Assembly (NCBI GenBank): GCA_965649825.1
Contig: OZ287711.1
Span: forward strand, 169,201-233,200
From: Penicillus capitatus
Lineage: Eukaryota; Plantae; Chlorophyta
Reading direction: 5' to 3'
DNA length: 64,000 nt
In this document: one piece after another, positions 4,387-56,752 of the stretch
Layout of the letters: every line of letters begins with the position of its first letter
How positions within the stretch are numbered: the first letter of the stretch is position 1
Notes under the pieces: generated by a model
Databases searched by the model: none
Told to the model about the DNA's origin: nothing
The model's input: only the letters and a program-made list of their open reading frames with translations
Program-made: the position numbers and the translations under genes

Positions 4387-5831
4387 ATGAGGTTCTGCGC
4401 AGGGGTTATCTTCTTTTCGTTATGTCTTTCAGCAAATGTCGTTCACAGCAAACATGGTCACTATCCTACGGAGACAAAACTCTCATCCACCGGAAAGTGC
4501 GTTTACCGGTTTGAGACAGAAGGTTGTGAGGGTTTTTTGCGTTTTCTGCTTTCAGGCCACTCATTCACAGACCCCTAGGCAGCGCCTTTAGGACGATTCT
4601 CTATCTGGACGGAGGCGGACTGCGCGCCATTTTCTCGGCGACGATCCTTGTCGAAGTCGAACAGTCTATAAAAAGATACCTCGTCAGACATCCCCACTTG
4701 CTGCACCCTTTCAACCACATCCGCAGTGTCGACGACTTCGATATCAATCTCGCTGATTTCTTTGACTGCATGTCGGGTATCTCGGCTGGCGCTGGGACTG
4801 CTTTGTATCTTGCCTCGAGGGGAGGTCAGGGTATCGCACGTGCTGTGCTTGAAAGACCAGATATCGTGGCGAGGTATGGGATGATACCCGCCGGAGGCGC
4901 CGAAGCTCTTCGTTTATTCTTTATAGAATTCGGCAGCGCAATTTTTCCGACGGAATCTATCAATTTCACAGCAGGGACGCCGCTGGATGTCACAAATCCC
5001 AACGCGCCAGGTGTCCTGACGCCTCTGTACCCGCCAGACGGGTTAGAAAGCACCTTCGGAACTTTCTTCGGAAACACAACTTTGGAAGACTGTGACACCT
5101 CCGTCATCATTCCAGCCTATGACCTGATCAGATCAGAGGGTGTCTATTTTGTTCAGAACAAGTTCAGAGAACCGTCAGTGACGTCCGCGGCTCGATTGGT
5201 GGTGCGTTCTGGGCCGAGACCGCTTCCTGCCAGTAATGGACGCTTTACTCCAGATTTTACATTTGAAGAAGGTAAGAATTATTATCTCAGAGACATTGTC
5301 GTCGCCTCAAGTTCACTTCCTTCATTTTTTCCGGCAAAGAATGTATCCCAAGTTGGCAATGACACTGTGGAGTTCACTATGATCGATGGAATTAATCCAC
5401 TGGCAACATCAGAGTTACCGGCGAGCAGTTTTGTCGCCGCCGAGACTGGAGCTGCAGACATCGAAAGCAGTGCCTTGCTCTCGATCAGTAACGGAAGAGA
5501 CACTTCAAGTTTCCTTGAGCTGGCGAACGAAGGGGCGATTCGTTGGCTTGGCGAGAACGCGTGGCTGGTGCTGACCCAAAACAGTGGAATCGACGGATTG
5601 TCAGCTCTAACAGATTACATCTACTACTCGAATCCAAACGTCAAACCGAACCAGTATCTCAGAGTGCAAAGATTTGCCCCGATCACGTCGGAAGAGGGCA
5701 TGGCGCTTGCAAGATCCGATGACCCGACGATCGTGACCTTTGTCGAAGAAATCGCTAAGGGCGCTGCACAAGAGTATCGCGAATCCATTGATTCTTATGT
5801 CGAACAGTTCATTTTCGGCAAAGTTATTTGA
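4387..5831 (+). CDS. Secreted patatin-like phospholipase/lipid acyl hydrolase; join(4387..4496,4571..5831)
   Basis: N-terminal signal peptide; phase-2 GT-AG intron 4497-4570 restores RTILYLDGGGLRA (Gly-rich loop); GISAG (GxSxG nucleophile); IDGINP (catalytic Asp). Confidence 0.85.
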
Positions 5832-9559: not shown

Positions 9560-10397
9560 ACGAAACGCCCAGACCAGAGAGCTTCGGAAGAAAACCCAAG
9601 AGCTCAAAGCCCAGATCCGCTGTGATGAGCGCAGCTTTCAGTTCTGCCCAGTTAAGCTGAAGGGAGAGCGACCGTCCTTCCGCCAGCTCGGAATCAGTCT
9701 GGAGCGAAAGCTCCAAATCAAGAACCTGAAGGAACACGTTGAAGACATCCGCACCGATCACGGAGGCCGTTTCTACGTGCAAATCCGTGCCGAGTGGCGT
9801 GAGTCCTTCGAGAAGTCATTGGATCGCTGCTTGGAATGTTCAGGAGACGCCTGGGATCTCGAGCTGCCAGAGATCGGTACGTTCGCAGTGAACAACCCGT
9901 ACCTCTCGCCCACAAAAGACAAAGTCCCCGTCGTCATCAGCAACGTCGACACAGACATTGATCCAAAAGCAGCCATCACCGCCATTGCAGAACAGAACAC
10001 AACCCGCTGGAAGATACCGGCAACTGAACTCGAAGAATCGCACTTTGCCGCCCCACACCGCTTGAATCGCCGGAAGCGCGATGCCTCAGGACAGCCCCTT
10101 CCCGAATGGACACCGAGCAGAAACCTGAAAGTCTTCGTGTCGAAGACTCTCTTCGAGATACTGAAGGACCCCAAGTCGGCGTTCGCGACGCTGGACTACA
10201 TGGTTCTGCCAATCCGCTCATTTACACGGTCTCCCAGGGTCCCTCAAGGAATTCCCTGATCCACATCTCATTTCATGCATGCTTCTGATTTGGGTTCGCT
10301 CTGCTTTGTCTGAACATTGATTAAGCCCTCTCCTCTGATGTTTAACTTGAAAAGGGGATGTAAGAAGCACCAAATTTATTATTATAATTTATTTATT
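9560..10397 (+). mobile_element. 5'-truncated non-LTR retrocopy containing only LINE ORF1 sequence + 3' UTR + AT-rich tail
   Basis: 16-bp TSD AATCAGGGATAACGAA (9544-9559, 10398-10413). Removal rejoins the protease region FFVIPD|CSKVILGLPGL. ORF resembles LINE ORF1 (VVISNVDTDIDP...RLNRR...PIRSF). Tail TTTATTATTATAATTTATTTATT. Confidence 0.85.
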
Positions 10398-11517
10398 AAT
10401 CAGGGATAACGAAGAATCTCAAACTGGCCACCCATGGTCCGACTCTTACTCTCTGAGTGAGAGTCCCGACTACTTCTGAGTAAACCCCATTGAAACCAAA
10501 TAGGATCTTCTTTGCTTCTGGTTCTGCTGTTGACACAGGAACGCCCCACTTCTGCGCCTTTGCCATGGGGATGACATTCACTGCACTACCGGTATCCAAT
10601 AACACGGAACATGTCTGATTGTCATCCTTGACCTTGGCTGTAGCATACATTAACGGGTAATGATCCTCTTTTGTCGCTGCGGCCATCACGTCCACATTCA
10701 GCTCTTTGCCATTCCCAATCGACTTCTTTGGGCAATCTCGCGCCCAATGTCCAGTCTCTTTGCAAATAAAGCACTTCTGCTTCGTAGGACATTGGAACAG
10801 GGTATGACCCACACCTCCACAATTGGGGCACTTCACTTCAACACGCACAGCATTGCTTTCTTCTCCCATTTTTGCTCTGCGTAACTCTTCTTCCAACTTC
10901 TTTACTCGGCTATTACTCAAACACAACAAAAGTGCAGCCACCAAGTAATTTGCTGCCCTAATCATTGGAATCCAAAAAACCCATTGACGAACTTTTCTCC
11001 ACATCGTACCCGTCAACAGTAAGCAAACCACGGCAATGAGTGAATTCCACAAGAGGAAACAAAATACCACTCCCATGAGCGGTCCTTGCACCTCCACAGA
11101 ATTCACCAATGCACTAAGTTCAGATTCGAACTGGTCGAGCAATGTGATAGGCTTCACATGCATTATCAACGACTGCTTAGTCACGAAGTACACTACGTAA
11201 CCTCCACGAACGAGGATCTCCTATGCGCACTGAAGAAGAGTTTTGCATTGCTCGACAGGTTCTTCTTGAATCGCTACCCCTTGTGGACTCGCCCCCCGGA
11301 TAGGCGGAAAACGCCATTTAGTCATAGAGGACCATGCCCATTCCACCCACTGTCGGGCAATAGACTTCCGCGCAGCGCTATTAATCTTAAGTTCGTTCAG
11401 CGCGCGTTGCAGCTCTTCGACTTGCGCCCTCAACGCTATAACCGTATCCGGCTCGGAGTATCTCGTTTGACTGCGCGTTCTTGCCACACGGACCGGGATG
11501 ACCAAAACGAACAACAT
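10398..11517 (-). pseudogene. Element A gag-pro: signal-like N-terminus, coiled coil, hydrophobic helices, 2 zinc knuckles, aspartic protease
   Basis: ORFs 11221-11523 and 10396-11193 are in the same frame, separated by one TAG (11221-11223). MLFVLVIPVRVA; LRAQVEELQRALNEL; LMGVVFCFLLWNSLIAVVCLLLTG; CPNCGGVGHTLFQC, CFICKETGHWARDC; DTG motif. Confidence 0.85.
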
Positions 11518-12255: not shown

Positions 12256-13980
12256 ATGCAAACATCTATGCCGCCAAATCCGACGCCGGAGGACTCGAAC
12301 CCTTCGAACGCGCCACCCCGTCCAGAACCGCCAGATACCCACGGCGGTGACTCGGAGCAACCCCTCCAGCCACCGCGACAGTCCTGGGCAGACTCAGTGG
12401 AAGCGGAATAGAGACGAGCGAGTCTAACACAGCCTCGAGCCGGAGATTACAAGATCACGCTTCGCCGCGTCTACGAAAAGCTTGTCACGATCAACAGTGA
12501 CGATACTACTCGCCCAGCACTGGAATCGGCCAAACTACTGGTTGAGGGTCTACTCTCCGGTGCGGAAATGGCAGACGCCATGCGCCCCGCAACCGTCCCG
12601 TCGCAGCATGCCGATGCCTATCCAACACTACGACAAAGTACCCTAACCGGACTGTCCTCCGGTCGCCCACCGCAATCGACCTACCTAAGCATTGCCCGCT
12701 CGAACTTGAGACCTGCCTCCAGACGTCCGCCCGAAGCGCTTCGGACTGGGACTGCCCCTATGACAGGAGTTCGTCGTGCTCCCTTCTCAGCAGCTGCCCG
12801 CGACAAACAAACAGCGTTGGACCGCCTACGCCGACTCCGCCCCCTAGCCCCGAATGCAAGCTGCCAGTTCTTTATGTCGCCCGTTGTGGAGGACGCATGC
12901 CGACCAGTCCCTAGCTACTTCCGGTTCAGAGAAGCGTGGGAAGCATGGGCAGCAGAAATTGGTGGTCGGATCGAGATGCTCCGCTCGATGCCGAGCGGTG
13001 ACTACTTGGTACAAGGCGACGATAATGTCATTCAGTGGATGCGTACGCACTATTACCCAGAAGTCAACTTTGTGGACTTTGGCTCCTGGCAGCCACGTCC
13101 ACAACCGACTGATCCTTCCCCCTCCGTGGTATTGGAAGGTGTTGATCTGGGCATGTCTCACAGAGAAATCATCAGAGAAATAAAGAAGAATGCGGCAATC
13201 CTTGAGATACCCGAATCGCAACTACAATCAGCAACACTCACCTTTTCCCGTTTCTTTCGGAAGCCTTTTGTGGGTTCGGGTGCTGAGCCCACCCTGAATG
13301 GACGACTGGTTGGCCCGGTATCGATCATTAGCGCTCTCAGACAGCGTCAAGGTTGCTTTCTGGGCACGATACCGATATATGCCAGAGCGTATTCAAGACC
13401 CACGAACAATACCACCGCGTACCAGCATGACAACGCAGGCACACCCAATGAAGACCATCGCGACAACCGTGACAAACGCACATCAACAGCCCGAGAGAAT
13501 GAAGAACAAGATCTCATGGCAACAGAGGAAAGAGAAGGTTATGAACAAGCGCTCCCACCTTCGGTGCGCCAGAAAACAACAGCGGACAATGAAACACGGC
13601 TACTCTCTCCCAGGAGGGACGACCCCTCCCGCAGAGAATGGCTGCAATCATTAACACTTCCCCCTCCGAATCTCTTAGCGTCGGCACCGCCGGCCACCGG
13701 AAAAGAAACACCAGAAGAGACGATAGAGGAGACGCCCGATACTGCAGGACTCAGAGCCCAAGAGACACTGCCAGACTCTGAAAACCCCTTCGAGGCTCTT
13801 TCGGCTGAGATTCAACAAGGACTGGACGACCTCTCCGATTTGCAGAGACGTCAAGCGGCGACTCCTAGCTTGACGCCACGAGACGTCCGATCCAAAGAAC
13901 CCCCGCCGTCCGGCCCTCGACGCAGCGAACGCCTTCGCCGCCAGCGCGAGCGACAAGAACAAGACAAACAACAACAATGA
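12256..13980 (+). pseudogene. LINE ORF1 with one premature TAG (12409-12411)
   Basis: ORFs 12109-12411 and 12568-13980 are in the same frame; SVVLEGVDLGMSHREIIREIK...ARAYSRP core; no CCHC knuckle visible. Confidence 0.8.
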
Positions 13981-14225
13981 CGGAGCACATACCACCGCGA
14001 TCACTCACGCACAAGCAATCTGCCACGCACCACTTCACCTGTGACCAATGTAACCTGGCTGGAAGACAAATCAGCATGGACGCACTTCAACTCTGGCTCC
14101 TGGAACAAAACCCAGACGTATTCATCTGCAGTGACCCCCCGTGGTTTCTGAGAACTCATGAATTCACATCGATGCGACACGCCTGGATTCGCTGTTCCAA
14201 AGACAAGGATGCCCTTGCGGGCATC

Positions 14226-17200
14226 TGTGAGCGACAGACGCTCGCGACAGAGACGGATGGGACATAATGATAGAAGATAAATTGTCGCGAAAAACGACAG
14301 AGCGTCCCTTTAAAAAAGTTCGCTAGGGTTTTGTGTTTCGCCGCGATTTTCGCGTTCGCGGTGCAAATAGCACATGGTTTCGGAGCGAGTTGTAACTGTA
14401 GTGGCCACTCTAGTAGCCACTACCCTCGGGAGACTCTTCGTCGGTTGGCTCTGGGAGCCGGCCGATAGTCCTAGAGGCGGCGACGAAGACTACTGCCCGG
14501 TCGATGAGGACGAAGAATTTATGTCGTCTCGTTGGGCGAACGCAAAATGGCTGCTTTGGGTGTTTAGCGCTTTGACGGTTATGACTATCCTCTCCATCGG
14601 AGGCGCACTGCTTGTTATATGGAGATGGAGACGGAAAGATTTATCTTTCGAGCCGGCGACCTGTAATCGTGAAGACGGAGTCGCGCTTGCACTATCGCAG
14701 CCATGGCCTTATGATTCAGAGCGCCGCGTCGGTAGGAACCGACGATTGAGCGAATGGACAGTCCGAACACATCGGCAGACTATCGCGAAGCTGGAATTTG
14801 AGATAGTGGACCCATTTCAACGGGTTAGAGCCTTGACAGCGCATTTCGATGAGACGACGCCATTCGGCGACTCAGTGACCGCCGATATTCGTTCGGTCTG
14901 TGTGGCATATACAGGAGGTGGCCCCTTACCTCCTAACACAAAGGGAGCAAGAGCTGAAGTTGCATCGCGCGGTGAGGAGATGTGGAAGGCTGTAGCCGCG
15001 CGCTTGGAGCGTCTGCATGGGGGAGTGGAGGACGTGCCAGACCGCGTGCAATACTTGGTTGAGTTGCGCCGCGGGGAGACCGAATCGGCCTTGGCCTTTG
15101 TCAACCGTTGCAGAGTCGTCTATTTCGGACAGTGTGAAGGAGTGAGCATGAGGCGCGCCATGAATGTGGTGATGGCGAAGCTCGAACCAGAGTTTGTAAG
15201 CTACCTCAGGAACAACGCGGATTACAATCTCCTCGATTTCGAAGAACTACAAGCCTTAGCAACTCGATACCACACGTGGAGTAATGTGAAGAGACCAAGA
15301 TCAGGTCACAGGCATCACATCGGGCACATCGGACAGGAGGAAGATTCCGTGGTCGATCCGTACAACGCAGATCTGGTCGATCCCGAAGATCCAGCGTATC
15401 AAGAACGCGAGGGCGAAGTTGTGAACATGACGAAGAAGATGGACGATACTGCCGGAAAATCAAAGCAGTTTCACGGACATTGTTTTAGATGCGGAAAATA
15501 CGGACATCGTAAACGCGATTGTAAGGAGAAGAGTGGTTCTGAGTATACCATGCCTTCGACGCATACGGCGACTAATGCGGCGACGATGAAGAGTTCTGCC
15601 GTTGAAGAGGGGCTCCCACTCTTGCATCTCACCGTCAATCTTGGTCAAACCCGGGATACTCAAAGGAAGACGCGGATGCTGGTCGATACTGGCGCTGCTC
15701 GCAGTGTGATACCTTTGCGCTTGGTTCGAAAGCAAGGGTGGCCCGTCGATCCCTCCGGAGCAAAGTCTCTCCAAGCCTTCAATGGTCAAGTGGAGAGGAC
15801 ATCGGGTGTGACGGACTTATGGACTACGATCGGCCGTGAGACTAGAAAGGTGCAATTTGAAGTCTCATCCTCAGCATCGCAGCCTTTGATTGGGAAACCA
15901 ACTCTCACTGCATTTGGTGCCATCATTGACTGTGTATCCGATGCATTACGCATTGAGAATGGGGAACTTATTCCATGCTCTGCGGTTAAGAGTCAAGTCG
16001 ACGTGGAATCCGAAGATCGACAAAGACGACCTGACAAAAATGATCTGGTGATACGGGAAGATGAGACTAGGACGGCAAAGCCATTCCGACGGGAGAACGC
16101 TGTTTTCTTACCCCTCGGCCGATCGTTAGTGCTCAAGCCGAAGGACATGACGACAGTGCAGTTGCCATATAGTGTCATGAACGGAGAAGTGCTCCTATCG
16201 GGTTCCGGAAATCTGCCGGCCGGAATAGCCGTCATCGGAGCCACGAGACAGCGAGGGGTACCTTTGAAAGTTCATTTCATCAATCTTTCAAGCGAACCCC
16301 AGCAACTGGGAGCAAAGAACGGAGCCGTCGGCTTTCTAGTCCCCCAAGAGACGTCAGTGTTCCTTCACCGAGTGTCAGGAGAGATAGTTCCCATTGAACG
16401 CAATCGCCCAGCAAAGCGGGCGGTTATCGCCACCTGTACGGTCATGGAAGAGCTGCAGAAGAAGTTTCCGGAGGTGCTTCGCGACGGCATCGGGATGACG
16501 ACCCACTATGCAGTCACAGATGCAGGATTGCGCGAAAATGTCGATTGGAGCCGACTTAAGCTGAGATTTCATTCGCAAGCAGAGTGTGACAAAATGCGAC
16601 CGATGGTAAGAGATCTCCTTGACCTAGACGTTATCGAGACGGTCAAGACCCGGCCAACAGTTGTCACCCCGATGATCATAGTGACGTCCCCAAACGGGAA
16701 GTCCCGTTTGGTCCATGATTTTCGTCTATTGAATGCAGCTTCGCTCGCACTACAAGCCAACGCTTTAGACAGAATGAAGACAATCGAATCAGTACCTGAA
16801 CGAGAGGTTTGGAGTACAATTGACCTGGCGAAGGGATATATGCAGATACCTCTCGATGAGTCAATTCGACAGTATTTCGGTTTCGAGCTGCAAGGTCAAT
16901 GGTACAGATTTAAGCGAGTACCGTTCGGTTGGATTCATTCGGGGACGCATTTCACGACGGCTCTCAACATGACGATGGCCGAAATAGCTCCAAAGTTGCC
17001 TCCGGATGCAGTGATTCGAGCCTATGTTGACGACATATTACTGGGTACCCAGACCGAGGAATCTCATGATACTGGGGGTGATTTTTCAGGCCTTATCGGC
17101 TCACGGATGGTGTTGCAACCCGCAGAAAATCCGTTTAAAACGTCCGGCTGTCGAGTTCCTCGGGATTGAGATCGGGCGCGACGGCCTCCGACCATCCTCG

Positions 17201-18987
17201 GGCCTCATTAAAAAGCTCTCAGACCTCTGTATACCGAACAACACAAAAGAGTTGCGGGTCGTGTTTGGTCTGTTGAACCAACTGGTCAGATTCCAAGGTC
17301 ATCAGCATGCCATCGTCGCCCCGCTGCGACAGTATCAAGGAAAGCCTCCGGATGCCTTCAGAACAGAAGAGTTTCGCAGAGTGTGGAATGAAGTAATAAA
17401 GAGGACCCAGACTGAGTGGCATGTGCTTAGCTTCCCCCAAAAGAATGGGAAGTGGACCGTGATTTCTGATGCTAGCTCAACGGGGTATGGGGCTGTTCTT
17501 TTATCGGATGACAAACCTGTGGCGATGTTCAGCAAGTCTTCGTCGAAGACTTGGGCACATTCCAGCGAGGCAGAAATCGACGCTATCTTGCTGGCCCTCC
17601 GTGCGTTTGAGGGCTACATCGCACACTGCCCCGTCGAGGTGTACACCGACAACTGGGCAGCCTTTCGCGCCATGTCTCCTGACAATTGCAGCCCGATTGT
17701 CCTCCGCAGACTGGATCAGATTTTGCAGTTTAACCCGAGTGTCAAGTTCATCCCAGGCGTTGAGAACACTGCTGCGGACCTTCTGTCACGATCCACCTAT
17801 CTCCAACGAAGGATACACGCAATCGATTCCCCCGAGGTTCCGACGGAAAAGATACCGACATTGACACTAGAGCGCAGAAGGTTCATTGAGGACGTACACA
17901 ACCGAGGCCATGTAGGACCCGCCGCAGTCGCGGATGAGCTTCGCCGGCGAGGGAAGTCATACAAGGGAATGTTCAAGGACATTAGGACTATTCTCAAGTC
18001 TTGTGATGCTTGCCAGAAGTGGCAGAAGCGAGTCCCACAGGAGTCATTTGGTTCCGTTGAAGCCATTCGCCCCGCTCAAGTCGTGGGGATCGATTTTATG
18101 GGACCGTTCCCGGCACAGAGCCGAAGCGCTGGAGGATACGTCGGGGTGGCGATTGACGGATTAACCCGTTTCGTAGAAACAGTGATTGTGCCGGACACTA
18201 GCATCCGATCCGTGATGAAGCTCGTTCGACATTGGATCAATCGACATTCGACTCCGGAAACGATCATATCAGATGCTGGAGCCGCGCTGCGTTCGAGCGA
18301 ATTCAGTAATTTCTGTGGCAGAAATCAGATTCGACATGTGATGGCCGCCCCTCATCACCAAGCTTCGAACGGACTAGTGGAACGTGCGATCCAGACCATT
18401 CTACGTAGGATAAGGAGAATGATGAGCACGAGCAACTCGCCCTGGCGCCGTTCGATTTCCGAAGCTGTGGGTATATACAACACTACAAAACATTCCGTGA
18501 CTGGATATAGGCCGAAAGAGCTTATGTTCGGATTGGGACAGTCGGAAGGGAATCCGGGTATGGCATTGGATAAAGCCCGACAACAAGCTGTGGTTCGTAC
18601 GCGACAACAGAGGGCATATCGAAATAGCCGTCGACAAGGGAGGCGCCAGATTCCGTTAGAGATCGGATCCGAGGTGTTGATTTACCTTCACAAGGGACGT
18701 CGCAAACTGGATCCCTGGTGGAGCGGTCCGCACGTCATCACCGCTCGCCTCTCCTCCCGACGATACTTGGTTTCTAAGAATGGAAGAAGCCAAGTAGTGC
18801 ATGGCGACGACTTAGTGAAGTATTGGCGCAGGGAAGCGTGTGAGCGACAGACGCTCGCGACAGAGACGGATGGGACATAATGATAGAAGATAAATTGTCG
18901 CGAAAAACGACAGAGCGTCCCTTTAAAAAAGTTCGCTAGGGTTTTGTGTTTCGCCGCGATTTTCGCGTTCGCGGTGCACATAGCACA
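14226..18987 (+). mobile_element. Young Ty3/Gypsy LTR retrotransposon B
   Basis: 149-bp LTRs 14226-14374 and 18839-18987 with 1 mismatch; 5-bp TSD GCATC; PBS TGGTTTCGGAGC (14375-14386); PPT GCAGGGAAGCG (18828-18838); domain order PR-RT-RH-IN. Confidence 0.96.
14374..18880 (+). CDS. Element B single Gag-Pol polyprotein: TM-anchored Gag, CCHC, protease, dUTPase-like insert, RT, RNase H, integrase; one frameshift near 17065
   Basis: WLLWVFSALTVMTILSIGGALLVIWRWRRK; CFRCGKYGHRKRDC; LVDTGAARS; YVDD; DASSTGYGAVL; HNRGH..CDAC; GIDFMG/SDAG/NGLVE; WSGPH. The frame changes just after YVDD. Confidence 0.9.
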
Positions 18988-21900
18988 GCATCTTCATTCG
19001 ATCAAACATTAGTCATCAACTCCTACCCCTTCCGACCCCCTCCGACAGGGTCTTGGCCATTTCACTGAACACAAAGATAGGTGAAATGGTAATCATTGCA
19101 TGCTACATACAGCACACAAGTGGCGCGGGTCTCTAAGCTCTGGATAGCGCTATCCGAATGGCAAAAAGTCGAACCTCACTGGTGCTCATAGGTGGCGACC
19201 TCAATGGACATTCGCCACTTTGGGGAGACCAGAACACAAACCCATTGGGAGCCCAGATAGAGGATCTAATCGGGGCCTTAGGGCTGATAGTTCTCAACAT
19301 GCCGGACAGCATCGCAACCTTTCAGAACAGCAGAGGACACAGCAGCTGGATAGATGTCACCCTGGGCACCCAGCACCTAGCCGAACTACTAGAAGCTCAC
19401 GAAGTGCTACCGGATGCTCTTCCTTCGGACCACAACCTCCTTCGCACAACACTCAACCTCGAAAGCAAACATATCCCAACGCGGGGAGTATGGACCTGGG
19501 ACCAGACGGATTGGCCAACCTTCGCAGTCCGCCTCGAAGAACGCCTCCCGAACTGGCTGAAGACTCAGAGTCTTGACTCTCCGAAGCTGATAGAAGAGAG
19601 TGTCACTCTCCTTTCAAAAGCCATCAGACAAACACGCTCTGAGCTGGTGACTTACCGACACCTCCGCTCTAAGCCAAAACCGTGGTTTACACCTGCAGTG
19701 AGGATACAGCACCGGGCCCTCCGGAAAGCCAAAAATGCACTGCACAAGGCACAGAGAAGAGCAGTCAATGGACAAGCGCCACCACAAGTCGCCACAACAT
19801 ATAAAAAAGCACGGCTCAAGTTTGAAGTCACGGTTAAAAATGCGAAGGATCAATGTTTCACAGACTTCTGCAAGCAAATTCGCCCACATGTGGACATGTG
19901 GGATAAATTCCGACAAATCTGTGGCACACGCCGCATCGAGTCAGTCCCGGCTCTCAGCACCGACGAACAAACGGTCAGTGATCCAGGAGACAAAGCCGAC
20001 CTTCTGCTCCACACCTTCTTTCCTGGAGCCACTACAACATCTCCTGGCACACCCGAGGTGTCCCAACCATGGGAACGTCCAATCCTCAACTCCCCTGTGG
20101 AACTCATCACCTCACAAGAAGTGCAAAACACGATCTCCTATGCACGCCGCACGGCACCTGGAAGCGATGAAATACCAGTGATCTGCTGGCAGGCCTGCTC
20201 CTCGTTCCTGGTCCCGATACTACAGCGAATCTACAATGCCTGCCTGCAGTGTAACTACTATCCCAGTCAGTGGCGTCACGCACAAGTCCTTCCCTTACCC
20301 AAAGGAACGAAGAATCGCTCGCATCCAAGCTCCTGGAGACCGATTAGTCTGCTGTGTAATGCAGGCAAGTTCATGGAAAAGATTATCCAACGTCGGCTTT
20401 CGCTATTCCCGGAACGCACAAAGGCACTTAGCGAGGCACAACACGGCTTCCGACGGAATCACTCCACTGAATCGGCCCTCTCGGTCCTCGCCGAAGACAC
20501 CACTCGAGCCTTCAGTCGACGGAAACAAATCGTCGCTGTCAGCCTGGACATATCCAAAGCCTTCGACTCAGTCTCGCACTCACTACTTCTACAACGCATG
20601 TCAGACCTGGCAGCACCGCAGTATATAACAAAGTTCCTTTGCTCGTTCTTGACACAGCGAAGCGCCACATTGACATTGGATGGAACCTCAAGACACGTCA
20701 CTGTCCCGCAAGGAGTACCCCAAGGCTCCAGCCTATCGCCGACCATCTTCTCGATCTACATGGACACGCTCGCAAACGTTATTCGACCTCCGGTGCGACT
20801 ACTGATGTATGCCGATGACTGCTTGCTGTATCAAGAAATCGGCCGTGAGCAGACAGACTGTGCGCCTTTGCAAACAGCACTAGCTCATACGATCCACTGG
20901 GGCGTCACTTGGAGCCTGTCCTTCAATCCGACAAAATCCCAACTCTGCCGCTTCAGCAGACTGCGTCGCACGAATCCCGTCGAACTGCACCAAGGCCCCC
21001 GCCTCCTCCGTGAACAACCAATAATCAGATATCTCGGGCTAGACATTGATACAGCATGGACATTCATCGGACATCTCAAGAACAAGAAAACTATCTGTCA
21101 ACGACGACTAGCCCAGATACGTCGTCTCAGTCATAGCCTCTGGGGTTCCTCTCCGTGGGTAACAAAGAGACTGATGGACGCATGCATCCTCCCAGTATGC
21201 CTATACGGCTCTTCGATCTATGACCCGATTTCCCGAGGTCGCTCATCACGCCTCCAAATCCTTCGCTCCGTCTATAGGACCGGAGGCATTTACATCACTG
21301 GAGCACACCGCACAACGCCCACGTGCTCGGTACTGCAGCTTGCTGGACTTCATCCACCCGAGGTCGACATCTTAGACCGTCTCACAAACTCCAAACATCT
21401 GTGGCCCTCACCTACAAGGCCTGCAGGGAGCAAACCGCGCTACATCTCGCCAGCAGAGCACCATGCTACGACCTTCGCACGCATAGCCGCTCAGGACTGG
21501 ATATCAGCGGACGTGCAACGTCTACTCCGAGAAAACATCGAACAAGGAAGACGCAGTCAGCTAGTCCAAGCCGCCCGCAAAGCTTACCTCACGACGCTCG
21601 TTTGCGACATCTGGAATACAGACTCCAAAGGACAAGCGCTGAAGAAAACGGGATGGTCTACAATGTCAAGCCTGGAGCAATCTTGGTTGAAACAGTTTTC
21701 AAGACCCAGTGTCACACGGCTCACACGCTTCCTCTCAGGACACTTTCCCATGAAGACATACCTAGCACGATTTCACTGCCTAGAAGAAAGCACCTCGTTA
21801 TGCTGTCGGTTTGGATGTGACCAAGAAGAAACGCGAGAACATCTTCTTAGCTGCCCGCAGCTGACCAACCTTAGAAACAAGACAATCGGGGCTGCGAATT

Positions 21901-22682
21901 TTCCCCAAACATTGTCAATTAACTATCTTTTGCAACTTGACAATTACCTGGCAGAATCCAAAATTACCTGAATTCCCCTTTCTCTGTAGTCAGTAAGAAC
22001 CATGGGATATACCTCAGTGTGAACCCCATGTAAAAATCACAATTAGAGAGAGATCTTGACGTCATGCTCGGATATAAAACGGGGGGCTGAAAGAAACTGA
22101 ACGCTTATCTTTAAAAAACAATCGTTCTCGTTTGCATACGACCGAACTCACGAATCGATATCTCAAAATCTCAGGCCTACTACGTATCAGTAGGTTCTCT
22201 ATGAATTCCCTCCACCTGATTATCCAAACATAGACCCGCGGCCAGTACACCACCGATTCCAGGAGACTCCGGGATATTCGAAGAATATTCCTTGTTGTTA
22301 CTTACAATAGGCCCGCGGCCTTGATGTGACATCACTAAACCCTACCCTATATAAGCATTGTGGATGTACAGTTCTTGTCTTTCGCTGTCTAAGATCTTGC
22401 GTTCCAGAGTTTACGATCTCTTACGATTTAAATCAGCTCCATCAAACACCCTACGCAAACACGGAAGGGTATGCAACGGAGAACCATATGCAAGGGTAAC
22501 GATGAAGTCGAACAAACTCTTAATTTAGCTCGGCAGAAGACAGGAAGCTGCCTCTTCATTAATTTAATAAATTCTCCTTTAGTCAGCTATAAATTCAGCG
22601 ATGCGTTACGGTTTTCGTCATTTTTCGCGTGTTCATAAAACGCCGAATACCACTTCGTTGTTAGCGCTTTGCTGTCTTTGAG

Positions 22683-24107
22683 GTGATGGATCATTCAATG
22701 CGTTCCGCGGTTATTCTAACGGGCTTGCAAAACGCGGTGATGATGCGGGGGTTCTATCACGATCTTCTCAGTGATGTGAGGAGGGTTCTGCAAGACTTAT
22801 TTGAACCTTATGTGGAAGGCGCGCGTTTCCCGGAACCTTTTAGAATAACAGCTACGGAGTGGTGGTACCCAAGGGTTTTGACGGTATTGCGGCGCCTGAG
22901 AGAATGGGGACGGCAGGGAGATGATGTTCATCGCATAGATGTACAGCTGGCTGCAGAGGGCAGACGTCATTATCGCACGTGGGCGGAATTTGCTCACGAG
23001 TGGCGCAATGAAATGGAGAGAAACCGCTTGGTGGAGCCCGCTGACGGAGTTGCTTACGAAAGTATTCTGAGCTTTGTACAGAGGATACAGCAGCTGCAGG
23101 CAACGACAAGAGACATTGGACGAGAAGGGACAGCTGCGGCCAGGCGCCAGTTGGCGAACGATTTTATAAGAATGACGGTGGCCAATGCTCCCGAATATCC
23201 TCCGCCTGCCGAAATCGTGGAAGGACCTGTCGCCCCGGCTGGACCAAACGGACACGAAGACGAAGGTTTCGCTGACGGCGTGGAAGGGCATGAAGACGAC
23301 GCGGCAGAAGAAGAACCGGCAGAGGGAGTTCCGGCGGGGCCAGTCGTGCAGGGACGTCCGCTCATAGTTGTAGGACGCACGCCTGAACAGCTGGAGAGTC
23401 AGGCCAGTAACGTACCGCACACTGTGCAGCCGGAGACGGAGACGGAGACGGAGACGGAGGGCGTGCCCATGGAGACGCACACGGTGCAGCCGGGAGAGGA
23501 GACGGAGACGCACACGGTGCAGCCGGGAGAGGAGACGGAGACGGAGACAGTGCAGCCGGGAGATGAGACGGAGACGGAGACAGTGCAGCCGGAGACGGAG
23601 ACGGAAGGCGTGCCCATGGAGACGCATACGGTGCAGCCGGGAGATGAGACGGAGACGGAGACAGTGCAGCCGGAGACAGAGACGGAAGGCGTGCCCATGG
23701 AGACGCACACGGTGCAGCCGGGAGCGGAGACGGAGACGGTGCAGCAGGAGCGCGTGCCCATGGAGACGCACACGGTGCAGCCGGGAGCGGAGACGGAGAC
23801 GGTGCAGCCGGAGACGGTGCAGCCGGAGACAGAGACGGAGGGCGTGCCCATGGAGACGCACACGGTGCAACCGGAAGCGGAGACGGTGACGGAGACGGTG
23901 ACCAAGCGAGACCGCCGTCGCAGGAGGCCTACTTTTGCGGAAGAAGATGTTCGGGCAAAGAAGGCCAGAACGGCGTACAATCTTCGGAGCACGCCGGCTC
24001 GAGACGAACGGCTGAAGAAGTTAAAGAATGAGGAAGATTCAAAACGGAAGGTCGACAAAGAGGCGGGGGGTTCATCTGGGAGCCCCCGGAAAAGGTCCAG
24101 AAGATAG
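22683..24107 (+). CDS. Intronless orphan protein (474 aa): helical N-domain, acidic modular repeat, basic NLS-like tail
   Basis: Long uninterrupted ORF; repeat modules HTVQP/ETETE/GVPMET; C-terminal KRDRRRRR...YNLRS...RKRSRR. No family recognised. Confidence 0.65.
   Translation: MMDHSMRSAVILTGLQNAVMMRGFYHDLLSDVRRVLQDLFEPYVEGARFPEPFRITATEWWYPRVLTVLRRLREWGRQGDDVHRIDVQLAAEGRRHYRTWAEFAHEWRNEMERNRLVEPADGVAYESILSFVQRIQQLQATTRDIGREGTAAARRQLANDFIRMTVANAPEYPPPAEIVEGPVAPAGPNGHEDEGFADGVEGHEDDAAEEEPAEGVPAGPVVQGRPLIVVGRTPEQLESQASNVPHTVQPETETETETEGVPMETHTVQPGEETETHTVQPGEETETETVQPGDETETETVQPETETEGVPMETHTVQPGDETETETVQPETETEGVPMETHTVQPGAETETVQQERVPMETHTVQPGAETETVQPETVQPETETEGVPMETHTVQPEAETVTETVTKRDRRRRRPTFAEEDVRAKKARTAYNLRSTPARDERLKKLKNEEDSKRKVDKEAGGSSGSPRKRSRR
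23419..23900 (+). repeat. Combinatorial coding minisatellite (HTVQP, G[EDA]E, ETETE, GVPMET modules)
   Basis: Recurring CACACGGTGCAGCCG, GAGACGGAGACG and GGCGTGCCCATG modules in varying order, always in frame. Confidence 0.9.
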
Positions 24108-32302: not shown

Positions 32303-33946
32303 TCAGAATTCGCTGTCCATGTCTGGGGGACGACACACGAAGAGCACCTTCGCCAGAACCTCGTGCGATTGCTCGGCGATTTCCTCCACTGTCTTCAGCG
32401 CCACCAGCGGCGGCGCAGAGACCAGGTAGTACGATTCGGGGTCTCGGGCCTCGTGGACGGAGGCGTCTGCGACCAACAAGCCGCTGCCGCTCAGTCTCAG
32501 CGCCTCTGCCTTGCTCTGCGGACAGATCACGCTCACGGTGTCGATCGCTTGACGAGCGAAGGTACCTTGGCGAGGATCGATGATCGGAGCACCGACAGCG
32601 AGGCGCAGTTCCTGATTCCGAGTGCGACGGGACGCTTGGCGTGGGAGAAGAGCGGCCAATTCGGCAGCGCCAGCCACTTCCACGGATGCTCGGGCATCTC
32701 CATCTCTTCCATGCTGAACAGGCCAAACTCGCCGGAGGTCTTGGCAACGGGGCAGCGCTTCAGGACGGTGCCGTGGACCTAGACGTCCCCCCTCCTTCAA
32801 ATCGCGGCTCCTCCGAATGGCAGAGAACCGTGTCGAGCTCTCCGGCGTAGGGCAGTGGACGGAACCGCGTTTCCTGACTCAGAAGCCGGTAGATGTGGAT
32901 CTTGGCAGGTGCGATCCGATCTCCGGAGTCCGACAGCTTCTCGTGGCCCGTCAGCACTGACGCCTGCGCAACAGGACCCCGCCGTCACATCCGTGACAGC
33001 GACATCTGGGCTACCAGCTTCTCCCGGGCCGTTTCGGAACGGACAACCTTGAGTCCCTTCTCCACGAAAGCGGCAATCAGTTTCCGTTCTCGGCTCTCGA
33101 GCGCCTGGAATTGCAGCAGGGCTGAGAAGGAAGGCTACAAGTGGGTTGATGTGACGTTTCGATAGTACTGGTAGGCCCACATGTCTTCGGGTGTGCATTC
33201 GAATCCCGCCGCTTCCTCCTCCCTTCTGTGGTACTCCTTCGCCGCTCTGGCCAGATCTCGCGTCTCCTGTGCTCCATCCAAAAGAGTGAGCAGACATCAC
33301 ACGAAGCCATCTCGCACTTTGGCGTGCAGTCCGTTCCGCGCTATGTACTCGGCACAGGACACTCGGTCTGTCACGTCGAGAAACCGCAGCTCGTACAGAG
33401 CGAAATGCGCCCCTGTCGGATTCTCAGCATTCGTAGAGCGAGAAGAGTGCGACCTTCGATCTCAAAGTACTCCATGGTGGTCTCGTATCCCGCGAGGTTC
33501 TGTTGGCGACTGTGGCGTGCGATGGACTGCCGAACAGACGCCGCCGTGACCAAGATGTCCTGTTCGCGCTTGGCGATTCCCGCCAGCTGTTCGATGAGAT
33601 ACGCGTCGTAGCCAGCGACGTTCAGTCGGGGGATGTAGGCAGCGAGCTCATACCACCGTCCCGCTCCCGCATTCAGCCGCTGGATCATCGCCTCCTCGTC
33701 GGTCTCGTCAACCGCAGCCGCGTCCCTGTCCTTCGTCTGGACGAAGTAGCCCATGGGCGGTCGGTACGTGCGTTTCCCCTGGGCGTCTTGCGGTTCGGTC
33801 GGCACGAGGGGTTTGGCGAAGGGCGACGGGGTGGGACGACTGCCGGGGACGATGAGGCGGTTGGGTTTGGCTTGGCCATCGCTGTTGCCGGAGTTCGGCA
33901 ACAGGAGGGCGCGGCAGGGACGACGGTACGCGACAGAAAACGCCAT
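32303..33946 (-). CDS. RAF1: Rubisco accumulation factor 1, multi-exon
   Basis: TYRPP; [15 protein letters not shown]...[19 protein letters not shown]; [10 protein letters not shown]; GEFG...WLALPNW; terminal VLFVCRPP. Confidence 0.85.
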
Positions 33947-33985
33947 CCTTCAATTGCGGAGACGCCAGTTAATGCGCGAAGATCG

Positions 33986-36083
33986 ATGTGGCGGAGATGC
34001 ATCGGCAGGTTCTGTTTTGTGACGACGGCCGATGCCGCGGGGCTGTTCGAGACGACGCGTCGCTGTCCGTCGGGCATTGATGTCGATGGCGAAGACTTCC
34101 GACGCAACGCCGAGGCAATGGCGCAACGCCTGACGTCGCTGAGGTGGGGTGCTGTCCCTTCCGCCGTGCGACGACATTATGGACGAGAGACCAGGGCGGA
34201 GGTGCGCCGAGTGGTGGAAGGCGGAGGAGAGAAGGCAGTGGAGAAGCACCGCTCTCGAGGGAAACGTATGCCGAGAGAGCGCATCGATCGGCTGTTGGAC
34301 CCAGGATCGGCATTCCTTGAACTCTCGCAGCTCGCCGCACACGAGCTCTATCCAGACGAACAGGTCCCGTCGGCCGGCATCGTCACCGGTGGGGCCACTC
34401 ACTCTGCTGCTGGCGGGCGATGGGGCCGTCCTCGTGGCTTAGGTGTCGGTCGGGTCCATGGTCGCCTCGTGGCGGTTGTTGCCAACGATGCGACGGTCAA
34501 AGGTGTGACTTTGCGGAGATGCTCGAGATCTGTCGAAGGTTGTTCGTGTCTTCGAGGTGGGACGTACTATCCGATGACGGTCAAGAAGCATCTGCGACTG
34601 CAAGAGATCGCCGAGACGTGTCGACTGCCGTGCGTCTATTTCGTCGACTCGGGTGGCGCCAATCTCCCCCGCCAGGCCGACGTCTTCCCCGACCGCTTTC
34701 ACTTCGGCCGCATCTTCTACAACCAAGTGCCGCACATGTGGGTGCGCATCTGGGAGACGAGGGAGTGGCTGCAGGCGCGGCTGTCGGCGGCGGGATGTCC
34801 TCAGGTTGCCGTGGTCATGGGTATGTGCGCCGCCGGCGGCGCTTACGTACCGGCCATGGCGGACGAGACGATCATCGTTCGCGGCAACGGAACGATCTTT
34901 CTCGGCAGTCCGTCGTTGGTGAAAGCGGCGACGGGCGAAGAAGTGACGGCCGAAGATCTCGGCGGCGCCGTGCTTCACACATCGACGTCTGGCGTTGCGG
35001 ACCATCTGGCCGAGAACGAAGACCACGCCATCCAGCTCGCCCGCGACATCTTCGCCACGGTTCCGCATTCGGCCGTGATGGGACAGGCGGCGGTGGCGGC
35101 GGAGGAGGAAGCGCCGCTCTACCCCCCGGAAGAACTCAACGGCTGTGTACCTGTCGACCCGCGAACGCCGTTCGACATCCGCTCGGTGTTGGCACGCATT
35201 CTTGACGGCAGTCGGTATCTGATCGACCCTCTCTTGCGCGATTCTGAGGGTGACTGTGTGGTGGCGTGGAGATTTCACGAGTTCAAAGAGAACTACAGGA
35301 AGACGCTGGTGACGGGATTCGGTCGTCTCTATGGTCAGGCCGTCGGCATCGTCGCCAACAACGGCGTCCTCTTTTCGGAAGCGGCGCTCAAAGGCGCACA
35401 CTTCATTCAGCTGTGCGGGCAGCGCGGCATTCCACTCCTCTTCTTTCAGAACATCACGGGGTTCATGATCGGTAGGACGCCGCTCTCCGTCGCGTCCTTT
35501 CCTGGACATCGCTCAGGAGACAGGGCAGAAGCAAGAAGCGGGCGGCATCGCCAAGAACGGAGCCAAAATGGTCATGGCCGTCTCCAATGTCCAGGTGCGG
35601 CCAGTCGATCCCCTGTGCCGAGCGCAAACCCGTGTGGCTAGGTACCGCGACTGACGGTGATCGTCGGCGGGAGCTTCGACGCAGGGAACTACGGCATGTG
35701 TGGCCGCGCCTACGATCCGGCCTTTCTCTTCATGTGGCCGAATGCGCGGATCTCTGTTATGGGCGGCGATCAGGCGGCCGACGTCCTCGCCACCGTGCAT
35801 CGCAAAAACCAACCTGGACAGGTAAGGCATCGCACAGCTCTTGGCATGACCGCGGTCGGAATGGCGTCTTCAGGAGTGGGCGCCGCACGAGAGGGAGCGT
35901 TTCAAGCAGGAGATCCGCGATCGCTACGCCCACGAAGGCTCCGCCTACTACTCGACGGCGCGTCTGTGGGACGACGGTATCATCGAGCCGAAGGATACGC
36001 GCTGGGTGCTGGGACTGGCCCTTGGCGCCGCGATGCACGGCGAGGCCGTTCGTCGCAGTACTTACGGCGTGTTCCGCATGTAA
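33986..36083 (+). CDS. MCCB: 3-methylcrotonyl-CoA carboxylase beta (carboxyltransferase) subunit, multi-exon
   Basis: [26 protein letters not shown]; [13 protein letters not shown]; [11 protein letters not shown]; [11 protein letters not shown]; AEDLGGA..H; [18 protein letters not shown]; ends GVFRM*. Confidence 0.93.
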
Positions 36084-55380: not shown

Positions 55381-56700
55381 TCAGATCGCCACGTCAGAAA
55401 TCCGTTCCATCTCGGCGGCCGTTCCCGATCGACCCGGCTGCGTTGCTACGTCATAGGGAAGGCGAAATCGAACGCAGCACATGACTTTGTATGGGGCAAC
55501 GTCGCGGACGACATGCACCTCGGCATCGATCGCCGCCCCCAAAACGTTCTCACACTTTTGTCGCATCATCTCTGGCGTCTCACTTTTTTGCATAAAAGCG
55601 TAGCAATGCACCATCGGCATCTGCTCCGCCGTCCAGTGCGCTCGATCGAAGCTGCCTCGGAACATGTCGAGGAAACCGATAGCGTACTGGGGGTAGTTCA
55701 TCACGATGTGATGACAACGTAGCGGCAGCGGCGGCGCGATGACATCGTCCATCGCAGCGTCACTCTTTTCCACTCTTCGTTTCTTTCGTCTCTCTTGAAA
55801 GGCGGCGACGTCGGCGCGGTAGTCCTCCGAAACGAACGGATCCAGATCGCCGTGGTGACCCAGCAGCACACGCATACAATGTCGTGCATCCAGGTTCAGT
55901 GGCAGCACGCGATCGACGACGGCGTTGAGAGCAATGTTGTGGCGCAGGTAGCGATAGCTGTCGGGATTGATGTCATTGGCCACGACACGGCAGCCCTTTT
56001 TGGCGGCGGGTATGGCGAAGGGCCCGATGCCAGCCATCAGATCCACGACCGTCTCGCCGGGATCAAACACATCGACCAGGCGCGTGTGCTCGTACTCCAG
56101 GCGACTGTTCCAATAGACTTTGCCAAAATCCAACCGAAATCGACAGCCGCTTTGCCGGACTTCGGTCTCGAGCGACGCATCTCCTGCCAGAACTTCGTAC
56201 TCCATCACACGGAAGGCGTTCTCCACCGTCGCCACTTTGTTGATCACCGTCTGGATGCTCGGATTCTTATCAAGCAGTACTTGACCGATGGCATGTTTGT
56301 ACGGCGCGTGTTCTGGGCGAAGATTGAGGTGTGCGATGTGGCCGATGCTCTCGAAGGCTGTCGGCGCGACGACCGTCGTCGGTAGCAGCTTCCGTATGAC
56401 TTCCGCCGCTGTCAGATGCTCGTATCCCAGTGAAAGCTCGTGATCGACCCATTCAACGTCGTCGCGCTCAAGGAGGCGCTGGACGTCCTCCGGTACGTTC
56501 TCTGCGATGTCGTCTTTCAGCAAAACGAGCCGCGTCGCATCGTTTGTGTCCTTCTGCACGGGTGGCACTCTGGCAGTCGTCAGAAGGTGATGCCGCACCA
56601 GACGACGGACGTCTTGACTGAGTCGCGACGGAACGCGGAGCGCTTTGACGCGAAGCGTACGACGAAAGGCCTCGCGATCGAGCGTTATACGTTCGGACAT
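55381..56700 (-). CDS. TRM5: tRNA (guanine-37-N1) methyltransferase
   Basis: FESIGHIAHLNL; FRLDFGKVYWNSRLEYEH; VVDLMAGIGPFAIPAAKKGC.V.ANDINPDSY; HIVMNYP; VRDVAPYKVMCC.RF.LP. Confidence 0.93.
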   Translation of the reverse strand: MSERITLDREAFRRTLRVKALRVPSRLSQDVRRLVRHHLLTTARVPPVQKDTNDATRLVLLKDDIAENVPEDVQRLLERDDVEWVDHELSLGYEHLTAAEVIRKLLPTTVVAPTAFESIGHIAHLNLRPEHAPYKHAIGQVLLDKNPSIQTVINKVATVENAFRVMEYEVLAGDASLETEVRQSGCRFRLDFGKVYWNSRLEYEHTRLVDVFDPGETVVDLMAGIGPFAIPAAKKGCRVVANDINPDSYRYLRHNIALNAVVDRVLPLNLDARHCMRVLLGHHGDLDPFVSEDYRADVAAFQERRKKRRVEKSDAAMDDVIAPPLPLRCHHIVMNYPQYAIGFLDMFRGSFDRAHWTAEQMPMVHCYAFMQKSETPEMMRQKCENVLGAAIDAEVHVVRDVAPYKVMCCVRFRLPYDVATQPGRSGTAAEMERISDVAI

Positions 56701-56752
56701 AAAAACGGACGCCAGACGCCAGAGCTGTCGCATACTGTACGACACGTCTCTC

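Follow-up and report, generated by a model that had tools for sequence, protein, structure and literature searches.

Whether an env-less retrotransposon can carry a membrane anchor on its own Gag protein is the question raised by a Ty3/gypsy element in the green alga Penicillus capitatus. The element lies in a stretch of 64,000 nucleotides (GenBank assembly GCA_965649825.1, contig OZ287711.1, positions 169,201 to 233,200 of the forward strand) that was analysed over its full length and is called the window here; coordinates refer to the window unless another contig is named. Ty3/gypsy Gag is usually treated as a soluble cytosolic capsid protein, and the membrane contact of retroelements is put down to env, to the retroviral matrix domain (MA), or to the IAP signal, glycoGag, or sORF2. 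An earlier note on this DNA had proposed that the Gag-Pol polyprotein of the element is tethered to a membrane by its N terminus. Sequence comparison and structure prediction make it probable that Gag is equipped, within its first ~90 residues, with an integral-membrane anchor that is the element's own.

The N-terminal region of Gag

The element is a complete env-less Ty3/gypsy long terminal repeat (LTR) retrotransposon of 4762 bp at 14226–18987 on the forward strand (Table 1). Its gag-pol frame opens with an ATG at 14374 that is composed of the final base of the 5' LTR and the TG of the primer-binding site (PBS) TGGTTTCGGAGCGAG. Since an in-frame TAG is located two codons 5' of this ATG, it is the earliest possible start, and the origin of the start codon is as the earlier note had described it. 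The PBS comprises the 15 nt after the 5' LTR, starts with TGG as tRNA primer-binding sites do, and lies inside the open reading frame (ORF), where it encodes most of the sequence MVSER; the start of Gag is thus dictated by the PBS. The same 15-nt PBS is present at two divergent loci of the family (L002 and L007; L-numbers denote loci or contigs and P-numbers proteins of the element family), with Gag otherwise about 25–30% identical.

The MVSER sequence is followed by a hydrophobic segment of aa 6–27 (segment 1), an acidic loop of 31 residues containing Cys-41, a 25-residue hydrophobic segment extending from Trp-59 to Trp-83 (segment 2), and the basic patch RWRRK (aa 84–88). Two hydrophobic segments separated by an acidic loop with one cysteine and closed by a basic motif had been noticed before, and both hydrophobicity scales applied here reproduce them. 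On the Kyte-Doolittle scale the best 19-residue spans score 1.84 (aa 6–24) and 2.19 (aa 64–82), with no other span above 1.5 in the 931-aa ORF. On the Wimley-White octanol scale segments 1 and 2 have values of −6.9 and −10.5 kcal/mol, respectively, and 0 of the 785 spans downstream of the capsid start fall below −1. The net charge over 10 residues is −2 after segment 1 and +3 after segment 2, the extreme N terminus being weakly basic and the loop very acidic. A Pfam scan gave nothing significant in aa 1–129.

The AlphaFold2 model, built from an 8-sequence family alignment, contains helices at residues 2–27 and 46–90, with predicted local distance difference test (pLDDT) values of 85–89 over the core of the second helix. 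Residues 91–122 are predicted to be disordered and are followed by a compact helical domain at aa 130–306 with a pLDDT of about 90. The top PDB matches to this domain in a Foldseek search are all capsids (HIV-1, BLV, HTLV-1, HERV-K, MLV, Arc, dArc1, Ty3, and Ty1) and the best BFVD matches are retroviral Gag proteins, with weak E-values (0.05–1 in PDB and 6.5e-4 for the best BFVD match) and TM-scores of 0.6–0.7 in single-lobe alignments. The capsid fold that the earlier note expected downstream of the hydrophobic segments is thus found in the model, and Gag combines the retroviral-type capsid fold (predicted) and the zinc knuckle by which Ty3/gypsy Gag is recognised.

The distribution of methionines bears on whether the hydrophobic segments could be bypassed by a later start. 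After Met-1, the Gag of the window element has methionines only at aa 50, before segment 2, at aa 70, within segment 2, and at aa 203, within the folded capsid domain. Segment 2 and the capsid domain are thus not separated by any AUG, and a product initiated at an AUG can contain the whole capsid domain only together with at least segment 2. Translation from a methionine downstream of the transmembrane region, which had been raised as an objection to a tethered Gag, would begin inside the capsid domain. The L002 ORF and P0011 likewise have no methionine between segment 2 and the capsid domain.

Conservation in sister copies and relatives

In the window copy pol is broken by one frameshift into two overlapping ORFs, the first of 931 aa encoding Gag, protease (PR), and reverse transcriptase (RT) and the second encoding RNase H (RH) and the zinc domain and core of integrase (IN). 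The polyprotein described in the earlier note is therefore upheld in its domains and their order and not as a single ORF. The ENA metagenome contig ERZ25074695 ctg311418 has the same two ORFs and matches with 0 mismatches and a sole gap of 5 nt, upstream of the gag-pol start; it represents the same locus, so it is not an independent confirmation of the frameshift.

The family was recovered by an exhaustive HMMER scan and is missed by a word-indexed search of 5.8 billion proteins, which returned nothing for Gag aa 1–400; the closest Pol among these proteins is only 41% identical. Scans with the Pol alignment gave 413 pattern matches in JGI metagenome contigs and 32 in IMG/VR, with no relative in either, and the 17-nt pattern of junction and PBS (C + ATG + PBS) matched 81 loci in metagenome contigs, all by chance, mostly bacterial ORFs starting MVSER and with 0 related by tblastn. 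The Gag alignment is too divergent for a locus search by pattern.

The HMMER scan retrieved P0009, an intact single-ORF Gag-Pol of 1503 aa that is 99% identical to the window element over Gag. Three loci of the same ENA assembly, and thus of the same genome (L004, L005, and L006), encode either P0009 or its twin P0039; each locus is 4771 bp long and has two identical 151-nt LTRs and its own target-site duplication (GAAGC, GCAAC, and GATGC, respectively). The N-terminal module is present in all three of these intact sisters, with 3 of the first 90 codons differing from the window copy, and a fifth copy, split into two ORFs, also begins with it. The LTRs of the window copy differ at 1 of 149 nt, as reported before. 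The conclusion drawn from this, that the element was recently active rather than decaying, does not hold for the frameshifted window copy and does hold for the family, in which three copies have intact 1503-aa ORFs and 0 LTR mismatches. Within the labels of the ERZ25074695 contigs the window locus stands at 22x, L091 (described below) at 20x, and the contigs with intact copies at 38–43x; the two at lower values could be haplotype-specific, heterozygous regions.

About ten relatives have a Gag identity to the window element of 20–33% and, where measurable, a Pol identity of 26–41%. They include the L002 ORF, P0010 (Caulerpa lentillifera g3811.t1 by EukProt assignment), P0011, P0012, P0014, P0017, P0044/P0021, and the fragment P0026. 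All of these have two to three strongly hydrophobic 19-residue spans in the 60–250 residues upstream of the capsid domain and almost none in the 800–1350 residues downstream of it, the hydrophobic spans being weak only in the short fragment P0035. The membrane-spanning candidates are therefore kept in relatives down to about 26% Pol identity as well as in the intact copies. In every member the ORF is open for 125–320 codons upstream of the capsid domain, and the module is read in the Gag frame in the window element as in every relative. Between the segments lies a loop that measures ~30 to ~150 residues across the family and always has a cysteine; Cys-41 is invariant in a 6-sequence family alignment, and a C-x(2-6)-C motif is found in most relatives. 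A control came from an unrelated gypsy element beside the L004 copy: the Gag-PR ORF of this element lacks such a segment (maximum Kyte-Doolittle value of 1.16).

Two of the relatives and one short ORF differ from the window element in ways worth recording. P0014 (1570 aa, L007 2909–7812) is a second divergent lineage in the same genome, with identical 111-nt LTRs and the same PBS, and its ORF starts 6 codons earlier, within the LTR. In P0017 (L089 2989–5259) the region ahead of the capsid-like domain is longer. It begins like a signal peptide, up to a small-x-small site of the Ala-x-Ala type, and continues with ~150 helical residues that include the cluster C-x3-C-x5-C-x3-C and then with hydrophobic segments, before a capsid-like region from near residue 320. 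At L091 7001–7165 a 54-codon ORF is 52% identical to the first 48 residues of the window element, including the PBS-encoded start, with no LTR-ending CA before it and no further part of an element after it; a relic and a detached copy of the module are the two possibilities. Over the 22 codons of segment 1, the window element and the L091 ORF differ 8, 2, and 8 times at codon positions 1, 2, and 3, respectively. Codon position 2, on which the hydrophobicity class depends, is kept while the others drift, a pattern as expected of selection at the level of the protein. The module thus looks like a conserved design that is old within its clade rather than a product of decay or of a recent capture.

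Proposed arrangement at the membrane

Sequence, predicted structure, and conservation lend good support to the anchoring of Gag in a membrane, as a prediction rather than a demonstration. In the arrangement that we infer, segment 1 would leave the ribosome directly after MVSER and, acting as a signal anchor or signal peptide, would take the nascent Gag-Pol to the endoplasmic reticulum (ER) or another endomembrane. The acidic, cysteine-bearing loop would be placed on the lumenal side and segment 2 would span back, with RWRRK keeping its C-terminal end in the cytosol. By the positive-inside rule, basic residues flank the cytosolic end of a transmembrane helix, and the position of RWRRK after segment 2 accordingly argues for a cytosolic location of the remainder of Gag. 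The charge pattern fits two arrangements, a helical hairpin whose ends are both cytosolic and a type I anchor preceded by a cleaved signal, the loop being lumenal in either case. The capsid domain, zinc knuckle, PR, RT, RH, and IN would then be held at the cytosolic face through a flexible linker of ~35 residues. Taking the place of a retroviral matrix domain, the module would concentrate the single Gag-Pol polyprotein on a membrane for particle assembly, and a cut in the linker by the element's own protease would free the capsid. Insertion itself, the topology, the choice of membrane, cleavage of the linker, and the effect on the fate of the particle belong to this proposal, so that what stands of the earlier claim of a membrane-tethered Gag is a module that looks like a real anchor in its sequence, AlphaFold model, and conservation. 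Budding, vesicles, and movement between compartments or cells, which had also been suggested, are pure conjecture.

Several observations weigh against this arrangement. Arg-20 lies within segment 1. The segments of several relatives are aromatic, are interrupted by arginine or lysine, and reach Kyte-Doolittle values of only 1.0–1.7; these could be interfacial and not spanning. The first AUG has a weak context, with C at −3, which makes leaky scanning and shorter isoforms possible. The pol of this copy is frameshifted. Among the near-identical copies the module shows 1 synonymous and 2 non-synonymous differences, too few to speak to selection, and over the four near-identical copies there are only 13 variable codons in 410, too few for a synonymous to non-synonymous count to be used. 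The RNA of 14340–14640 (301 nt) folds better than 100 of 100 shuffled sequences (z = −2.97), and some of the conservation may act on RNA.

Alternative explanations

The alternative that survives best, although unlikely, departs least from the arrangement above. Here segment 1 is a cleaved signal peptide and segment 2 is the sole span, giving a type I protein with a lumenal stub of ~30 residues and Gag still tethered on the cytosolic side. The N-terminal position of segment 1 behind the short, charged MVSER would suit a signal peptide, as would the acidic stretch that follows segment 1 in most members and, in P0017, a classic-looking hydrophobic core that ends in small-x-small. Segment 1, however, has 19–22 residues in most members, longer than typical signal-peptide cores, and the window element has no clear small-x-small cleavage site.

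Somewhat less probable again is that the module is a minimal fusogen-like or envelope-substitute protein fused to Gag, on the lines of sORF2 and the FAST-like proteins or of a class I fusion subunit in miniature, with segment 1 as an exposed patch on an N-out ectodomain and segment 2 as the sole anchor, serving passage between cells or gametes or enveloped budding. The layout, with an N-terminal hydrophobic patch, a transmembrane helix, and a polybasic patch located 5' of the capsid, resembles that of sORF2 and the FAST proteins (PMC11952523). The relatives with longer helical loops and a C-x(2-6)-C motif could point the same way, as could P0017, in which ~150 helical residues with a cysteine cluster stand between the signal-peptide-like start and the hydrophobic segments. 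The loop of the window element, however, has only 31 acidic residues with a single cysteine and is predicted to be disordered at aa 31–44, the module is not a separate ORF, and no N-myristoylation motif is present, residue 2 being a valine dictated by the PBS. No sequence or fold match to any fusogen was obtained with HMMER, with Foldseek against PDB and BFVD, or with Pfam, and the single-sequence AlphaFold model of the P0017 N terminus (pLDDT 42) is unusable, so no fold search was based on it. Nor does the module have the layout of the transmembrane subunit of a class I Env protein, in which a fusion peptide, a long heptad-repeat coiled coil, a CX6C(C) loop, a second heptad repeat, and a transmembrane anchor follow one another; the loop of the window element has 31 residues and one cysteine, and the Pfam, PDB, and BFVD searches gave no Env match. 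The wider form of this idea, for which we see slightly less reason still, is that a whole clade of env-less green-algal Ty3/gypsy elements has a Gag-fused device that doubles as an envelope or fusogen-like protein and is enlarged in P0017. If true, it would mean particles that are self-enveloping or transmissible from cell to cell without env, a third route besides env capture and sORF2.

It is very unlikely that the hydrophobic peptide is incidental, with the first ~270 nt constrained mainly as RNA for primer binding, dimerisation, or packaging, and with Gag either starting downstream or tolerating the extension. That MVSER is dictated by the PBS, that the first AUG lies in a weak Kozak context, and that the leader folds better than shuffled sequences would all be in keeping with such a constraint. 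Just after the PBS, moreover, an 8-bp hairpin (14398–14423) contains the palindrome GTGGCCAC at 14401–14408 and encodes part of segment 1, and L091 has a similar palindrome, GGTGGCCACC, at the same place. The relatives without the palindrome GTGGCCAC nevertheless keep a hydrophobic segment at that position, and hydrophobic segments occur at the same place in relatives with unrelated nucleotide and amino acid sequences there. The ORF that stays open upstream of the capsid domain in every member, the 8/2/8 pattern over codon positions, which is as expected of selection on protein, and, in the window element, L002, and P0011, the lack of any AUG from the end of segment 2 to the start of the capsid domain argue against an RNA constraint as the main cause. 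The leader RNA is probably functional too, and the hairpin could be a dimerisation or packaging signal that overlaps the coding sequence.

We consider it most improbable of all that Gag is translocated into the ER lumen, as Ty1 Gag is, or adopts the topology of glycoGag with a lumenal capsid, as an accessory or secreted form. Precedents exist for both (PMC3945221; PMC12530543), but the charges on either side of segment 2, with an acidic loop ahead of it and a basic patch behind, favour a cytosolic capsid domain. Gag is encoded nowhere but in the gag-pol ORF, which is one ORF of 1503 aa in intact copies, and if its product were lumenal and purely accessory the element would lack a structural Gag.

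Three further candidates were rejected: a captured host sequence, with no homologue found outside the family by HMMER or Pfam and with the module present across the clade; an organelle transit peptide, the segments being far too hydrophobic; and a separate upstream ORF as in sORF2, the module being in frame with Gag in all members. An anchoring module fused to Gag thus remains the reading that we prefer.

Anatomy of the element and its surroundings

The LTR pair of the element has TG..CA termini and is flanked on either side by a 5-bp target-site duplication, GCATC (Table 1). Pfam domains follow one another along the element in the order CCHC, PR, RT, RH, IN zinc domain, and IN core, and the assignment to Ty3/gypsy is based on the order PR-RT-RH-IN. 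No chromodomain was found in the Pfam scan of the element. The pol ORF ends 42 nt inside the 3' LTR, stop codon included, and thereby leaves no room for env, in agreement with the earlier description of the element as env-less. The design is extremely compact: the ORF extends from the final base of the 5' LTR into the 3' LTR, so that coding sequence takes in the PBS, the presumed polypurine tract, and the first part of U3. A search with ARAGORN for tRNA genes, among which the primer might have been recognised, was negative for the window and for nine loci.

Table 1. Features of the retrotransposon and of the N-terminal region of its Gag protein
Feature	Position	Strand	Basis or remark
Target-site duplication, left (GCATC)	14221..14225	+	
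5' LTR, 149 nt, TG..CA; final base supplies the A of the gag ATG	14226..14374	+	
gag-pol gene (Gag, PR, RT, RH, IN), one frameshift in pol	14374..18880	+	
PBS TGGTTTCGGAGCGAG	14375..14389	+	
Hydrophobic segment 1, aa 6–27; candidate signal anchor, first transmembrane helix, or signal-peptide-like segment	14389..14454	+	hydrophobicity, AlphaFold helix, L091 codon pattern
Acidic loop, aa 28–58, Cys-41	14455..14547	+	aa 31–44 predicted disordered
Hydrophobic segment 2, aa 59–83, strongest transmembrane candidate	14548..14622	+	hydrophobicity, AlphaFold helix
Basic patch RWRRK, aa 84–88	14623..14637	+	directly 3' of segment 2
Linker, aa 89–127; aa 91–122 predicted disordered (pLDDT < 50)	14638..14754	+	AlphaFold
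Capsid-like helical domain, aa 128–306, conserved across the family	14755..15291	+	pLDDT about 90, Foldseek; HMMER family matches align here
CCHC zinc knuckle, aa 369–385	15478..15528	+	Pfam score 19.8, just under the gathering threshold of 20.8; motif kept in family
Aspartic protease, aa 415–516	15616..15921	+	Pfam
Conserved domain of unknown function between PR and RT	16042..16695	+	family alignment
Reverse transcriptase, approximate bounds	16696..17180	+	Pfam
RNase H	17396..17695	+	Pfam
Integrase, H2C2 zinc domain and catalytic core	17870..18511	+	Pfam
3' LTR, 149 nt	18839..18987	+	
Target-site duplication, right (GCATC)	18988..18992	+	

The spacer between PR and RT (about aa 557–774) has no significant Pfam match and is conserved in the family, with an identity to the window sequence of 36–46% over 121 columns. 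When its family profile was compared with PDB sequences, the sole match was the dUTPase E165R of African swine fever virus, at a non-significant E-value of 1.5; the domain may be a dUTPase-like barrel.

The gypsy element is nested in a non-LTR retrotransposon of the long interspersed element (LINE) type (12568–14225 and 18993–21971). When the flanks are joined at GCATC, an open stretch of 166 codons passes through endonuclease-like motifs just upstream of the ORF at 19158–21971, which has Exo_endo_phos_2 and RVT_1 domains. On the reverse strand, 10396–11193 holds a piece of another retroelement in which a CCHC knuckle and an aspartic protease are recognisable; its identity to the matching part of the element studied here is about 31%. 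A tandem array of GAGACGGAGACG-rich units at 23407–23920, mostly 33 nt apart (11 copies of the 100-nt reference), sits within the ORF 22683–24107, which has no Pfam match. The host genes in the window include a patatin-like phospholipase (4698–5831), a tRNA methyltransferase of the TRM5/TYW2 type (55381–56790), and the beta chain of methylcrotonoyl-CoA carboxylase (33503–35641), for which the best named relatives, at 55–62% identity, come exclusively from green algae (Chromochloris, Bryopsis sp. KO-2023, Coccomyxa, Chlorella, Trebouxia, and Ostreobium), in keeping, like P0010 of Caulerpa lentillifera, with a green-algal host.

Comparison with known systems

In retroviruses Gag starts with the MA domain, through whose myristate and basic patch the precursor is bound peripherally to the membrane for assembly. 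The algal module shares the N-terminal position and, by prediction, the attachment to a membrane, whereas MA is a folded, globular, peripheral domain and not a transmembrane hairpin. In the IAPEz elements, the gain of an ER-targeting signal at the N terminus of Gag together with the loss of env is described as having given rise to an efficient intracellular retrotransposon, in a preprint account that cites Ribet 2008 (10.1101/2022.06.22.497016), and IAP Gag is brought to the ER by the signal recognition particle (SRP) (PMC3945221). The resemblance to IAP, an env-less element whose Gag has an N-terminal hydrophobic signal, is functional only. IAP is a mouse betaretrovirus-like endogenous retrovirus with a signal reported to be host-derived, whereas the algal element belongs to Ty3/gypsy and has two predicted helices, a cysteine-bearing loop, and a basic patch in a module that has no detected host homologue and appears old within its clade rather than recently gained.

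The glycoGag of MLV (gPr80Gag) is an N-terminally extended isoform of Gag that is translated from an upstream CUG as an integral protein of the membrane with type II orientation (PMC12530543), the extension coming from leader sequence adjacent to the PBS region (PMC12530543, PMC3423011). Both glycoGag and the algal protein are N-terminally extended forms of Gag, integral to the membrane in the former and predicted to be anchored in the latter. However, glycoGag is an accessory isoform that is made beside soluble Gag and has its capsid part on the lumenal or extracellular side, while in the algal element the anchored form is the only AUG-initiated product with the whole capsid domain, which is predicted to be cytosolic.

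The MDG1-group Ty3/gypsy elements of Drosophila are env-less and have, upstream of gag, a separate ORF for a small transmembrane protein, sORF2 (PMC11952523). In this 63–107-aa ORF an ectodomain of ~30 residues is followed by a transmembrane helix with a polybasic patch behind it, and an N-myristoylation motif is usually present; the protein associates with capsids at membranes and is proposed to act in cell-to-cell transfer in a manner like the reoviral FAST proteins (PMC11952523). The view in the earlier note that soluble Gag, with membrane functions contributed only by env, is the norm for Ty3/gypsy elements needs to be qualified in the light of sORF2. The algal element shares with this group the lack of env and the general layout of a putative membrane module encoded 5' of the capsid, with a strong transmembrane candidate and a polybasic patch right after it. 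In contrast to sORF2, its module is fused in frame to Gag, lacks a myristoylation motif, has a second hydrophobic segment, and shows no detectable sequence similarity.

A PBS inside the gag ORF is also found in Ty1. Translation of Ty1 Gag, in addition, involves SRP; the protein enters the ER without a recognisable signal and is reported to return from the lumen (PMC3945221). The likeness to Ty1 consists in an LTR-retrotransposon Gag translated at the ER, as would be the case for the algal protein, and in the position of the PBS. Ty1 differs in being a copia-type element and in having no recognisable signal or transmembrane segment.

N-terminal hydrophobic signals on retroelement Gag are thus already known, and the algal module looks like a little-known variant of them; a full-text literature search limited to open-access papers found no description of a transmembrane-anchored Ty3/gypsy Gag. 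For annotation, it is of consequence that these Gag proteins have no Pfam match and are overlooked by word-indexed protein search. The window element, Caulerpa lentillifera g3811.t1, and several metagenomic members make up a small, concrete family for work on localisation and topology. If the anchoring reading is correct, an integral-membrane module on the only Gag of a young algal element of 4.8 kb would represent a further solution to the place and manner of particle assembly, and the use of membranes by env-less LTR retrotransposons would extend beyond animals.

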